DNA of 64,000 nucleotides from Bugula neritina (Eukaryota > Animalia > Bryozoa), in assembly GCA_964035545.1 (NCBI GenBank), contig OZ037769.1, positions 3,577,929-3,641,928 on the forward strand, read 5' to 3'. Shown here piece after piece: positions 397-15,491 of the stretch. The position numbers were made by a program, and so were the translations under genes. Within the stretch, counting starts at the first letter, position 1; each line of letters starts with the position of its first letter. Below the pieces are notes generated by a model. The model did no database searches. It was given only the letters and a program-made list of their open reading frames with translations, and had not been told where the DNA came from.

Positions 397-2652
397 TTTT
401 TGATTGTGGAAAATCGCTTAAAGCAGCACAAAGTAGTTTGGGAGGCATTGAGTATGGAGTTGATGGCTTAGAGTTTATACAAACACTGCACTCAATGACC
501 AACAACTGTGTGCTGCTTCTAGCAAATTCCATCATTATATCTGAAAACACACCAACTTTTGTATGCCTATCCTTGTTTCTTTCTAACACAAACTTTATTA
601 GCAATTAGAAAACTTTGAAAATTATCTTTATGCTTGCAAAATAATTAAATTTTCACAATAATATTAATGTGTATAATAAGAATGCAAGCATTGCGCTTAT
701 CGCATATTATATAGCTGCTCTAATAAAACCTGTATATTCTTTTTATAACTTATATATTTATATTTTTTATACTTTCATACTTCTTAATTTACTTTGATCA
801 TTTAATGCAATATTACGATTGATTGCTTTGATAATATACATTTAACTAATAGTATGACATCATATGTGATTATAATTGTACTTTATATTTATTTTTATTA
901 TAAACCAAATTTTTAAAAGAAAAAAAAACTGCCAGAAGACACAAACCAAAATGGTTGAAGTTTTGTATAGATAACTTATTTCATTCAAGTGATTTATCTG
1001 AATATTTATTTTTTATTTGTTTAGAAATTATATATAATAATAAATTTTTGCATCCAAGTTAAAAATGATGAAACTAACTTATTGCCAGTATTTTTATAAC
1101 CCACTAAAGAAATTATGTAACCAACTACCTTACAATAAGTTTAAATTTCTTTCGCTATGGATACACAATTACAAACTAGCAGCTTCTGAAGCCACTGCAA
1201 TTTACAAACATTTTACTGATTCTAACAAAAATCTACATTAAGTACATAAGTCTAATAACTATCATGCAGATAAAATAATACTCAATATAGAATTAGGTTT
1301 TGCAGTTTAATCTACATGTGTGCAGCTCCAAACTAAATGTCTCTATATATCAAATTGTAATCATTGCTTCAACAAATTGGAAGTTACAAATTATATTCCA
1401 CATTCCCATCAAATGTTAAGTTTTTGAGTATTTATGCGTGTTTTTGTCTTTGGGTAGTTTTGCTCTTTGAACAAAATTATCATATATCATATAAAATATA
1501 TATAAAGTACAATTATAGTTACTTAAGTATAAAAATATATTGATATACTGATGTATATTGTTACTAAACTTCTAGCATTAATTGTTGAAATTGAAAATAC
1601 AAAAATTTCATGAGAATTTCGACTCCGGTTGTTCATTAACCCTGTCTATATAGTCAACAGAGGTTATTATGTTTAACAATTATTCTCTTAAAAAGTGCTA
1701 ATACTAGCGAAAAATTATTTTAGGTTTTTTGACCTGCTATTCTAATTATATTGAGTTTTATTCCAAAGGGCCAGTTGTTAAAGCTGAAAGTATAATCTGA
1801 ATGAACAAGAGTCAAATAGATATTAGCATGTTATTGTAGAGATACAAAATCTGGTTGCAAACAATCCATGTGATATTTATAGCTAAAGCTAATGTTTATT
1901 GCAAAGTGCTTCATACATTTCATGTCTAAATGTTATACTTGAACTTGTTTTGCTTCCATACTTAATGTTATAACTGAACTTGTAATGAACTACATTCAGG
2001 GGTCACTTTATAAATATGCATTTATTCAGTGAATTTTTCAACTCTCAAACAAAGAATTAGAAAGTAATGTATACAACATCAATAAAAAAACCAGATCTAC
2101 AAAGGTGAAGGAAAAAACGTGTCAAAAAATAATTATTATGCACAACTTCTCATAGAATCATAATATTAGGTCTGGCCCTGTTACTGCTCTTGTAGCCATA
2201 TACTTATCACCATCTCCATTTGGAAAGTTTGGGTTTTTTAGCTTTCAAATTCCTGTAAAATACAGCTAAACTGAGTATATGTAAAGTTCAAATAAGGTTA
2301 CAGAATGCAGTCGTGAGCTAGAAAATCGGTATAACTGCAATTGCACAATAATTTACAAAACAAGATTTAAAATATTTAACATTAGTTTAACCTACATTGC
2401 TCAGATGCGCTAAAGGTAAGTGACATCATACTGTACTAGAGCTCCATCAGCAAACTACTTTAAATGCTGCCAATAGCTGGAGGTCCTGGTAGAGGAATCT
2501 AAAATTAAATATATTAATTATAGGCAACCATATGCAGTATAATATACTGTATATATATAATGTGCAGTGTATATAATACTAATGTATTATATATGATACA
2601 ATAATGTATATAATGTATATATATGCAGTAGATACATATACAAGGTATAATA

Positions 2653-2866
2653 CTATATATATATATATATTATATTATATATATATATATATATTAGAAA
2701 TATATATATAATATATATATATATATATATTAGAAATATATATATAATATATATATATAATATATATATATATATGTATATATATATATATATATTATAA
2801 TATATATATATATATATATATTATAATATATATATATATATATATATATATATATATATATATATA
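2653..2866. repeat. Interrupted (TA)n microsatellite
   Basis: Seen directly, in intron 1 of ncRNA copy 1. Confidence 0.95.
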
Positions 2867-2943
2867 GGTATACAATATATACACTTAAATAGTAACATAT
2901 AACAAGTCAACAAACAGTAGAAAAGCCCAATACTAATAAATAT

Positions 2944-3094
2944 TTTTCTGGATAGAGTCGCTGTCAGCTCGTGTTGGCCCGCGCATGACTAGCTAGGCTA
3001 TAGCGCAATGGGCCTCATCATCGCCTCCTTGGCATTTTCTAATGTCCTTGTGTTATTAAATACCTTTGATGAAATAAACCAAACAAACAAAAAA
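2944..3094 (+). mobile_element. Short retroposed insertion (SINE or LINE 3' end) in intron 1 of ncRNA copy 1
   Basis: ~150 bp absent from the matching intron of copy 5 (empty site near 13815-13835). It ends in aataaaccaaacaaacaaaaaaaa and is flanked by aaatat on both sides (2938-2943, 3095-3100). Confidence 0.6.
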
Positions 3095-12187: not shown

Positions 12188-13691
12188 CTCTGGAATCTAA
12201 CACAGCCTCATAGCTTTGTGCTTTCATAACAATTAAAAGCTTTTCATCCTTCAGTGACATAAACACAAAGCAAAGAAAACTGAACATGTAAAGCTAAAAG
12301 CTGGAAAGAATTAAAACAATTTCTTTTAATTTTCTTCATAACTTTAACATTTTAATTCTTAAATGTCAAAACTCAAAAGTTTTTTTGAAAAGTTTTTACT
12401 GCATTAGGCTATCAATTCTCAAATAATAATTTTTTTTATTAGGATGTAATTAGTGAATTCTAATATATGCATAATATTCAAAATTATGAGGTTAAAATAG
12501 CATATGACATGAATTCACACAAAGTATTTTTATTTGGTCAGTTTTAAAGTATGCACTCTACCACGTTGTCCACAGGCTATTAAATTATGTTTAAACTTTC
12601 TTCATTTTCTATAATTAATCAAAATGCATATAATATGTCATTTCATATACATCAATATCTAATCACAAAAATACAATGATTACGTTCTGATAATGTTTAA
12701 AAACACATAATACAGAGAGTTATAAAATAATATAATTTATTTGATTACAAGGATAACGTGTAATTAACCAAATTGTTATAGGCAGATTATTTATTGACAC
12801 ACACATGCAAACTATATAGCAGCTTCTAATGCAGCTTATAGTTTCACATAAACATCACCAATAAATAAATAAATACGTACCTTATTATTACACTTTATTA
12901 ACATGGCATCTGCATGAAAACTTTAGCCTACATATAATTTGAATACTTAATCTGGCATTGCATTTTGCAATTTATTCAACATGTGTGCACAACTCCAAAT
13001 TAGAAGAGTTTCAAGTTTTGGTCATTGCTACAGAAAGTCTGCAATTACAAGTATTTTAATTTACATTCTGGCAGCATGTTTCACTTGAATATACTTGCAT
13101 ATATTAGCCAGTTGGACAATGCAGTTCTGCATTCCACTCATTCACTAAACCAAAATAATCTTTGGTAACTGAGGAAAAAAATATACTTATAAAGATATTT
13201 TCAATCAAAGAATATCAAAATCTTTTAATTCTGACAACATGCCTATGCTTCTTAAAATATGGTTAGTCAAATTTTTTTTTACTATAATAAGTAATCAAAT
13301 GCCCCCTTCCACCCTACCACTACGGGCTTTAATTAAATTATATAGTTGTATATTTATATTTAATAGAAAAACAATCATTGTATGTTATGTGGCTGAAATT
13401 TGATAACATATTATTGTGATTTGTGATTTGGTTAAATTAAAATCCAATTACAAAAATTATAAAATATTGAGATGATAGTAGACTTTAGCTGCTATAGCTT
13501 TACATATAACATTGTGCTTTGTTAGCTTTTTCAGCTTTTAGTTTTACATATTCAGCTATTTTCACTTTACATTTCCAGTGTTTAGCTTTACTTAGCCAGC
13601 TTTCTTGGCTTTGTGTTTATGTCACTGAAGGATGTAAAGATTTTAATTGTTCTGAAAGCACAAAGCTATGAGGCTGTGTTAGATTCCAGAG

Positions 13692-14710
13692 TATAAAAGT
13701 GTGAGTTGAGTGGCTGAGTTATGAGACTGGAGTTGAGATTTACAAGTTATAATCTCATGTAGATGTGGGATGTATTGGGTTCCTAAAGAGCTGTGAATGG
13801 TAAGTATAATATCTATATTATATATTTATTAGTATTGGGCTTATCTACTGTTTGTTGACTTATTATATGTTGCTATATAAGTGTATATATTGTATACCTA
13901 TATATATATATATATATATATATATATATATATATATATATATATATATATATATATATATATATATATATATATATATATATATTGTAACCTTATATAT
14001 GTATCTACTGCGTACATATATTATATATACATTCTTGTATCATATATATTAGTATTATATACACTGCATGCGTTATCATGAATACTTAGTATATAATATT
14101 TTATTTGGTTGTATTACTGATATATTAAATTTTAGATTCCCTTACCAGGACTTCCAGTTTTTGACGGCACTTAAAGAAGTTTGCTGATGGAACTCTAGTA
14201 CAGTATGATGCTGTTTGCCTTTACTGCACCTTAGCAATGTAGGTTAAATTAATGTGAAATAATTTGATCCTTTTCTTGTGAATTAAAAATTGTACAATTG
14301 CAAATACAACAACTTTTTGCATATGTCTGCATTATTAAACTATACATGAACTATATATAATATGGTATAATTACACATTAGCTGTGTTTGACAGGAAATT
14401 TGGAATGTAGCAAGCTAAAAACTTCTAAACTGAGATAATAAAGATGGATACAATAGCAAATAAAGCACCTGACCTGAGAAGCACCCTGAGGCTCATGTTT
14501 GAAAGTATTTCTATAAAATCTTCGTCGGACCCCATCAATTGTACATAGAGAGGGTTTCCGATTTGAAGCTGTACATAAGAATTATTTTTGTATACCACTT
14601 TTTTATTTCCACCTTTGAAGATCCGGTATTTTATTTGATGTTGTTTATATTGCTTTTTGATTCTCAGTTTGAGAGTGGAAAAATTCACTGAATAAATGCA
14701 TATTTATAAA
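13692..14710 (+). ncRNA. Copy 5 of the 3-exon ncRNA/micro-ORF gene
   Basis: TATAAAAG at 13692-13699, exon 1 ends at 13799, exon 2 at 14136-14238, exon 3 from 14395, AATAAA at 14691-14696. Confidence 0.62.
13899..13985. repeat. (TA)n microsatellite
   Basis: Seen directly, in intron 1 of ncRNA copy 5 at the same position as the tract in copy 1. Confidence 0.95.
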
Positions 14711-15491
14711 GTGACTCTCTAGTGTAGTTTATTACAAGTTTTGTCATAACATTAAATATTGGAACATAAAGTTTGCAATATATTATTGTTGCAATGAATA
14801 GTCTATGAAGAATTTTGTCAACAATGGCTATAGCTTACACAAAGCTTGACAATCTTCCTCCCATCAGGTTTTATACCTCTGCAATAACATGCTTATGTAT
14901 TTTGACACATGACCCTCATTATCTACAGCTTACATTCTGCTTTGATCATTAATCCTTTGCAATAACACTCAATTTACTTAGAATGGCAGGTTAACAGAAA
15001 CCAAATATGTTTTTTGAAAAGTTTACTAGAACAATCATGAAATAAATAGTTATTATTTTAAGAGGTATCTTGGGCCTTGGGGGAACAATGGAAGTAATCT
15101 AACCAGGTATAAAATACATTGAATAATGATAGAAAGAGCTAAGATCACTATTTATTTATTATGAAATTCAATAATATTATTGTTAGTAGACTACTCTAAT
15201 AGTTGTTATGGCAAAACTTATAAAAGTTGTAACTGAAATAAAACGTGCACGGTTAGGAAACATAATTTGGAGTTAACCTCTTTCACAGTTGTAATCGCTT
15301 TTCGTAGTCTATTCCAATGAATTAAAATACTCCATTGGCTTATTCAGCTACGTAACTACTTAGCGAGTAAAATTTTGCACTAAGTTCAATGGTCAAGGTC
15401 ATTAAGGTTATCGTGATCGTGACGGATCTATCATATTCTTGTATCAAAGCTCATTTCTTAAGAGATTATCATTTGAAATTGTGCTTTTGTT

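Follow-up and report, generated by a model that had tools for sequence, protein, structure and literature searches.

We analyzed a 64-kb stretch of the genome of the bryozoan Bugula neritina (hereafter the window; contig C5:3,577,929-3,641,928 of a 216-Mb assembly in 321 contigs) and found that it carries five of the nine copies of a family of small three-exon units, in which a 160-bp block at the 5' end is 96%-100% identical across all 36 pairs of copies. We propose that this is a lineage-specific, multi-copy family of RNA polymerase II long noncoding RNA (lncRNA) genes, whose promoter and exon-1 island is held by selection and reinforced by gene conversion, a reading to which we give about an even chance of being correct. 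Each unit would be an independent, TATA-driven RNA polymerase II gene, and its predicted product would be a spliced, polyadenylated RNA of three exons and ∼430-500 nt; since no reading frame is conserved in this predicted RNA, it is most likely a lineage-specific lncRNA. Purifying selection on the promoter and exon-1 sequence would keep the island nearly invariant, and recurrent conversion between copies would reinforce this uniformity, because conversion persists only where identity is still high. In exons 2 and 3, mainly the splicing and 3'-end signals would be kept, and these exons may serve processing, export, or stability.

Copy number and gene structure

Alignment and motif searches placed five copies (A to E) in the window, at the sites and on the strands (−,−,+,−,+) that had been claimed in an earlier note on this DNA. 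That note had counted only the window, and the family proved to be larger: the block, exon 2, and exon 3, used as separate genome-wide queries, each returned the identical nine loci and nothing further. The additional copies (F, G, H, and I; strands −,+,−,+) form a second cluster at C5:7,585,241-7,594,941, ∼4 Mb from cluster 1 on the same contig. The note had also described a palindromic cluster; the inverted arrangement is indeed present, but duplicated head-to-head gene pairs are a better description of it. B and C, D and E, F and G, and H and I are arranged head-to-head, with spacers of ∼1.3-1.9 kb, C and D are tail-to-tail, and A faces a relic of a sixth window copy (4758-5051, plus strand), head-to-head with it, from which the block and the gene body have been deleted. 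What is left in this relic is the upstream flank (4758-4877) and, almost immediately next to it, the 3' flank (4895-5051); the former is 85% identical to 13529-13650, and the latter, read as 5051-4895, is 82% identical to 1685-1840.

Copy A (2003-3280, minus strand) has its block at 3121-3280, the TATA box at 3221-3228, exon 1 at 3121-3198, exon 2 at 2396-2498, exon 3, with an internal deletion, at 2003-2252, and AATAAA at 2021-2026. In the same order, these elements lie at 7047-7206, 7147-7154, 7047-7124, 6677-6779, 6224-6530, and 6242-6247 in copy B (6224-7206, minus strand), and at 9108-9267, 9160-9167, 9190-9267, 9530-9618, 9764-10080, and 10057-10062 in copy C (9108-10080, plus strand), whose exon 2 is 14 nt shorter than the others. 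Copy D (11139-12239, minus strand) has them at 12080-12239, 12180-12187, 12080-12157, 11607-11710, 11139-11453, and 11157-11162, and copy E (13640-14714, plus strand) at 13640-13799, 13692-13699, 13722-13799, 14136-14238, 14395-14714, and 14691-14696.

All nine copies follow one plan. The sequence TATAAAAG is found in each of them, 100 nt before the exon-1 donor. Provided that transcription starts 30 nt after the TATA box, exon 1 would be 78 nt long, and the island, that is the 160-bp block, would consist of ∼80 bp of promoter followed by exon 1. This exon ends in ATG|GTAAG[T/C], with CTG in place of ATG in copy F. Intron 1 (174-889 nt) is rich in microsatellites and has the acceptor TTTTAG|ATT. 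Exon 2 measures 103 nt in most copies (89 in C, 104 in D, and 110 in F), and is followed by the donor AAT|GTAGGT in cluster 1 and GTATGT in cluster 2, with the exceptions of TAG|GTAGGT in C and AAC|GTATGT in G. Intron 2 is ∼145 nt long, with the acceptor TTTTACAG|GAA. Exon 3 (250-320 nt) has at its end an AATAAA, enclosed in a small hairpin, beyond which lies a conserved GT-rich stretch; a 24-nt context of this signal is exactly the same in the five window copies.

Despite the divergence of the introns, the TATA box, donor 1 (GTAAG), acceptor 2 (TTTTAG), donor 2, acceptor 3, and AATAAA are retained in all nine copies, so that every locus has the conserved promoter, splice, and poly(A) signals of an RNA polymerase II lncRNA gene. 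In cluster 2, every signal is intact in three of the four copies, copy F being without the exon-1 ATG and having a 7-nt insertion in exon 2. The nine exon models thereby agree with the earlier note on the presence of polymerase II signals of the messenger RNA (mRNA) type (TATA box, GT-AG introns, AATAAA) and on the retention of all splice sites; its predicted junctions, 9267/9530 and 9618/9764, are also those of our exon model of copy C.

Conservation of the promoter and exon-1 island

Among the five window copies, the block varies at exactly four positions, where about four had been claimed, and no block difference is fixed between the two clusters. Outside the block, pairwise identity has a much wider range: 49%-88% in the upstream flank, 45%-93% in intron 1, 73%-98% in exon 2, and 56%-95% in exon 3. 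When copies are compared between clusters, identity is 71% in the upstream flank, 97.5% in the block (98.5% for exon 1 alone), 67%-74% at the ends of intron 1, 89% in exon 2, and 77% in intron 2; in exon 3, it is 75% over the first 100 nt, 67% in the middle (where 41% of the alignment is gaps), and 87% over the last 105 nt, and it is 70% in the 3' flank.

The two edges of the island are of different kinds. Its 3' edge falls exactly on the splice donor in each of the nine copies, and thus in both clusters, and its 5' edge decays gradually over ∼100 nt, as a promoter would show. Intron 1 had been said to diverge straight after GTAAG. It does diverge there, but its sequence is not random at once: the first 45 nt are 52%-91% alike, depending on the pair, in the window, and 49%-93% alike across the nine copies.

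Gene conversion and proposed selection

Different segments of the copies are related to each other in different ways. Over the 108 nt upstream of the block, the copies fall into the groups {A, B, E, G} (79%-88%) and {D, F, I} (70%-81%), both of which run across the clusters, so that the two flanks within each head-to-head pair are old and unlike each other. According to segment identity matrices and trees, the gene bodies group as (B, D), (C, E), and (F, G, H, I). Across intron 2 and exon 3, the bodies of the four cluster-2 copies are 90%-95% alike, with upstream flanks of 59%-70%; at the start of intron 1 (45 nt), D is paired with E (91%), and G with H (93%). Such discordant segment relationships are those of concerted evolution, and the resulting mosaic shows recurrent gene conversion, inverted copies included. 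On this comparison of sequences, gene conversion is a demonstrated contributor to the history of the family, one that the earlier note had not considered.

Several observations weigh against a lncRNA family maintained by selection. Over 171 nt, copies A and C show 100% identity, compared with 53%-54% in their flanks; this exceeds what selection on a promoter or a leader usually achieves, and conversion may thus do most of the work. Furthermore, the block has undergone approximately five changes in the old cluster-1 copies versus approximately nine in the young cluster-2 copies (four in F and three in G), out of step with the branch lengths of the gene bodies, and the scarcity of changes in cluster 1 is explained more easily by conversion than by uniform constraint. 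Exons 2 and 3, at 87%-89% between clusters, are barely above the best-matched upstream flanks (88% for E-G, 81% for D-F), so that the mature RNA is only weakly constrained beyond exon 1. On the sense strand, the block folds no better than its shuffles (z = −0.4 and +0.7), and RNAalifold, applied to the conserved 3' end, predicted a hairpin around AATAAA with a compensatory change in none of its 29 pairs. Lastly, no transcript was seen in public RNA assemblies, which were reached through called proteins only, using a sense open reading frame (ORF) of exon 3, an antisense ORF of the block, and an ORF of copy B.

Taken to its extreme, conversion would account for the island by itself: the copies would be decaying, functionless relics, and the island nothing but a self-sustaining conversion tract between paralogs. 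The mosaic relationships, which prove conversion also between inverted copies, would fit this explanation, and so would the homogenized bodies of cluster 2 (91%-95%, versus 59%-70% for their upstream flanks), the identity of A and C, the exon-3 deletion of copy A, the lost ATG and altered exon 2 of copy F, and the existence of a relic from which the whole gene has gone. However, neutral tracts should end variably, and this one stops exactly at the donor in every one of the nine copies, which belong to clusters 4 Mb apart. A further argument comes from the surroundings of cluster 2, which is flanked (C5:7,584,300-7,584,595 and C5:7,595,257-7,595,572) by pseudogenized copies of the window exons at 5459-5689 and 55-393, with ∼80% identity to the originals, stops, and frameshifts. 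These decayed, co-duplicated neighbor exons indicate that the two clusters derive from an old segmental duplication, and while they decayed, all nine loci kept their four splice sites, TATA box, and AATAAA, in agreement with a maintained lncRNA gene. Pure conversion also has the difficulty that, to stay within the island, it requires the island to have been diverging more slowly than its flanks beforehand. We therefore consider it unlikely that the copies are mere relics.

For the identity of the island, purifying selection and gene conversion are two possible causes that the present comparison does not separate, and in the lncRNA reading that we prefer both would contribute. Within this reading, we infer that the units are transcribed from a start ∼30 nt after the TATA box and that their function lies in the 5' end, in exon 1. 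If expressed, the units would constitute a bryozoan-specific RNA gene family that is invisible to protein annotation, and their sharply bounded, conserved 5' module would be a clean target for knock-down or pull-down of exon 1. The family would also be a compact natural case in which selection and gene conversion freeze 160 bp while adjacent bases drift. If not expressed, it would be no more than a segmental duplication in ordinary decay that contains a hot spot of conversion.

Coding potential

We tabulated ORFs on nine joined exon models, and ran searches exon by exon. The claim that there is no long ORF in common is upheld, as no frame opened by ATG and exceeding 17 codons is common to the copies. 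No frame is preserved across the paralogs, which share only an ORF of 13 codons, which opens at the exon-1 ATG and closes at an invariant TAA of exon 2 (8/9 copies), and a recurrent ORF of 17 codons located in exon 2 (∼5/9 copies). A further ORF, in exon 3, opens with M-(D/A/T)-T-I-A-N-K, after which both its frame and its length (13 to 62 codons) vary from copy to copy.

These ORFs could be taken to belong to a fast-evolving family of small proteins or micropeptides, several copies of which would be pseudogenes, and whose product would be either the 13-residue peptide or a peptide of 40-60 residues translated from the ATGG of exon 3. The recurrence of the exon-1 ATG and of the TAA 13 codons further on can be cited for it, as can the context of the exon-3 ATG, with A at −3 and G at +4 in eight of the nine copies. 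Over its first 15 codons, the exon-3 ORF has 10:18 synonymous to nonsynonymous changes versus 6:24 in the other two frames, an excess that is suggestive only and that we estimate, on few sites, to be nonsignificant. In copy G, this ORF is lost to a stop and an in-frame ATG is gained four codons later; in copy C, there is an ORF of 89 codons, improbable by chance in AT-rich sequence. The exon-3 frames, however, diverge past ∼15 codons because most indels are not multiples of three, and several AUGs lie upstream of them. The 13-codon ORF has three synonymous and eight nonsynonymous variant codons, the very counts obtained in the other two frames, and the conservation of exon 2 continues unchanged beyond the invariant TAA, with no frame bias in the codon-position counts of this exon. 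No clear third-position or synonymous excess was found in any frame across the nine copies, a comparison with few sites and low power.

Neither do the putative peptides resemble known proteins. They have no signal peptide, and a Pfam scan of the ORFs of the units gave nothing above noise. A word-indexed search of 5.8 billion proteins returned no homolog for the sense exon-3 ORF of copy C or for the antisense block ORF, and an exact look-up of the 57-residue ORF of copy B had no match. A full HMMER search with the antisense ORF of copy E produced only three unrelated-looking, repeat-like matches in multiple stretches (19 of them in a protein of 4872 residues). Pfam, two word searches, and one full HMMER search thus revealed no protein family, an outcome that supports the interpretation given in the earlier note. 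Altogether, we find a micropeptide family improbable, and maintain the lncRNA as our preferred interpretation.

RNA families, folding, and the opposite strand

An Rfam search, among the checks that the earlier note had proposed, yielded no match at the gathering score in the window, and at E-values up to 5 only two chance-level matches (E above 1) between positions 8900 and 10300. No transfer RNA was found, no consistent T-run terminator was seen, and exact 22-mers of the block had no match in Joint Genome Institute (JGI) metagenomes. A structured RNA was also considered as the identity of the family, and rejected for want of support from Rfam, folding z-scores, or covariation.

One could go further than a lncRNA with a conserved 5' end, and regard exon 1 (78 nt, ending AUG|GU) as an autonomous RNA module under selection at the level of single bases, which might act as a sequence-specific guide, as a protein platform, or as a second leader donor of the mRNA type. 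Such a donor, in a phylum for which trans-splicing is a very recent observation, would be Sm-less, TATA-driven, and AUG-terminated. Exons 2 and 3 would in each case be a disposable processing cassette. In a comparison of exon 1 with spliced-leader (SL) RNA, U1, U6, and exons 2 and 3, the longest complementary match was 8 nt, which is the chance level. We hold both the autonomous module and its use as a leader donor to be very unlikely.

The units might also be read from the opposite strand. The block would then be a terminal exon, with the acceptor ...CATTCACAG| and an ATTAAA near its far end, and TATAAATA, which overlaps the sense AATAAA, would be the promoter. The antisense strand has a TATA-like motif, the antisense block is open for 41 codons and has a plausible acceptor and ATTAAA in all nine copies, it folds slightly better than shuffles (z = −2.0), and the residual similarity in the first ∼30 nt of what we call intron 1 would suit a branch-point and pyrimidine region. 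On the other hand, changes in the 41-codon frame are eight nonsynonymous to one synonymous, and no homolog of it was found in the word-indexed protein search. The model requires a weak GTAAAA donor, which is lost in E, a micro-exon of 11 nt, and a further donor, which C and E do not have, whereas on the sense strand consensus signals are present at every site in nine of nine copies, together with the conserved GT-rich element after AATAAA. An antisense gene is accordingly a long shot, and the sense-strand lncRNA remains our choice.

Candidate spliced-leader RNA genes of Bugula neritina

From an intronless HAUS1 ORF adjoining GTF2H5, a 90% protein cluster, which includes the NCBI protein KAF6019848 of Bugula neritina, led to public contigs of this locus. 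An unspliced contig (L013) has the acceptor cttgcag|atatctc; in a spliced GTF2H5-HAUS1 contig (L015), a 22-nt sequence ending in GTTGCATAAAAG stands before this exon and replaces the genomic sequence upstream of the acceptor. This leader, taken from a single transcript, has no match in the window at up to two mismatches. In the genome, it is present in at least 30 units of ∼210 bp, located at C8:11.85-13.14 Mb, C3:31.46-31.63 Mb, and C5:8.08-8.32 Mb. We read three of them in detail (C8:11,853,180, C8:12,202,774, and C8:12,439,991). In each, the leader, with its end GTTGCATAAAAG, is followed by a GTAAAT donor and then by a conserved part of the intron of ∼110 nt, and CACACCGTTT or a close variant lies ∼90 nt before the 38-nt leader segment. 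Upstream of the U6 and U1 genes of Bugula, the same motif or close variants of it occur between about −55 and −65; CACACCGTTT is probably the proximal sequence element of the small nuclear RNA (snRNA) genes of B. neritina. The ∼210-bp units are thus candidate SL RNA genes of this species, located here as a by-product together with a promoter motif that they have in common with its snRNA genes. A search of a literature library found no paper that pairs Bugula neritina with a spliced leader.

In public Logan contigs, the same GTF2H5-HAUS1 locus is seen both unspliced (L013 and L014) and spliced (L015 and L016). The Logan HAUS1 protein cluster is ∼94% identical to the HAUS1 ORF of the genome analyzed here, which would fit a sampled sibling lineage of the B. 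neritina species complex.

SL RNA was also tried as the identity of the nine-copy family, as a gene of this or of the snRNA type would donate exon 1 in trans. Although the family is multi-copy, with a nearly invariant 5' exon that has a consensus donor and ends, like flatworm leaders, in AUG, and although Bugula does trans-splice, as seen on L015, this is extremely unlikely and we rejected it: the leader on L015 is a different one and maps to separate genes, CACACCGTTT is found neither in the block nor in the flank upstream of it, no U-rich Sm-like motif is common to the first 45 nt of intron 1 and the intron has no conserved segment, and exon 1 is followed by conserved cis exons and AATAAA, so that the family is neither of the SL nor of the snRNA type.

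Genomic setting and duplication history

Cluster 1 stands between the last exon of a C2-domain gene (55-393), to its left, and a Myb-domain gene that starts near 15,493, to its right. The region has a high AT content, GT-AG introns, and (TA)n tracts, and GAATGGTAAG[T/C] occurs five times versus 1.5 expected. Between the tail-to-tail copies C and D, a GC-richer island (10280-10480), which may be another repeat fragment, contains two ORFs (87 and 61 codons), the only ones of appreciable size in the region. Between the relic partner of A and copy B, there is an open, exon-like stretch (5345-5689) that ends in a good donor, AAAG|GTAAGA, and has no Pfam match.

The earlier note had argued that the family is not a transposon, and our results concur. 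The copies number only nine, grouped in two clusters on a single contig, rather than hundreds of dispersed matches; homology around the copies fades gradually into the flanks; and no Pfam family, transposase and reverse transcriptase included, was found in any ORF of the units. A genuine mobile element provides a comparison. Intron 1 of copy A contains a GC-rich insertion of 135 bp (2941-3075) with at least 40 dispersed genomic copies at 100% identity, a very young and probably still active short mobile element, similar to a short interspersed nuclear element or to a miniature inverted-repeat transposable element (MITE). The same tool that returned these at least 40 identical, dispersed matches returned only nine clustered ones for the family, which is therefore not a transposon.

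The two clusters may have arisen from an ancestral head-to-head pair through tandem duplication of the pair, followed by the copying of the whole region to a site 4 Mb away. The spacers of different head-to-head pairs are 67%-78% alike, and short inverted repeats (ccagtcaca... / ...tgtgactgg) with the look of foldback or MITE remnants are found in them at 3900-4160 and 7960-8080.

Comparison with known systems

The family resembles several known systems in part. Like loci of hairpin RNAs and endogenous small interfering RNAs, it has inverted copies, tail-to-tail or head-to-head, within 1-2 kb. Unlike in such loci, each Bugula copy has its own promoter and poly(A) signal, and the tail-to-tail arms, only 72%-87% alike, are too diverged for efficient double-stranded RNA.

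With SL RNA genes, it has in common the multiple copies and a strongly conserved 5' exon that is limited by a consensus donor and ends in AUG as in flatworm leaders. It differs from them in its TATA promoter without CACACCGTTT, in having no conserved intron or Sm segment, in its two cis exons and AATAAA, and in the sequence of exon 1, which is not that of the leader seen on Bugula mRNA.

Genes of the conotoxin type form families of secreted peptides in which the 5' end is conserved and the mature region hypervariable. The steep drop in conservation from 5' to 3', the variable, indel-rich middle of the last exon, and the tandem amplification of the Bugula units are reminiscent of them. The units nevertheless have no ORF for a signal peptide, the ORF opened by the exon-1 ATG stops after 13 codons wherever this ATG is present, and frames are not preserved across the variable part.

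In the palindromes of the human Y Chromosome, TTTY transcripts are multi-copy noncoding families that lie in inverted-repeat amplicons subject to arm-to-arm conversion. In comparison, the Bugula arms are old and diverged (55%-88%), with near-identity only in the 160-bp island, and the genes are tiny (∼1 kb). Like the TTTY amplicons, however, the Bugula family combines spliced units with poly(A) signals and no ORF, inverted pairs, conversion between copies of opposite orientation, and restriction to one lineage.

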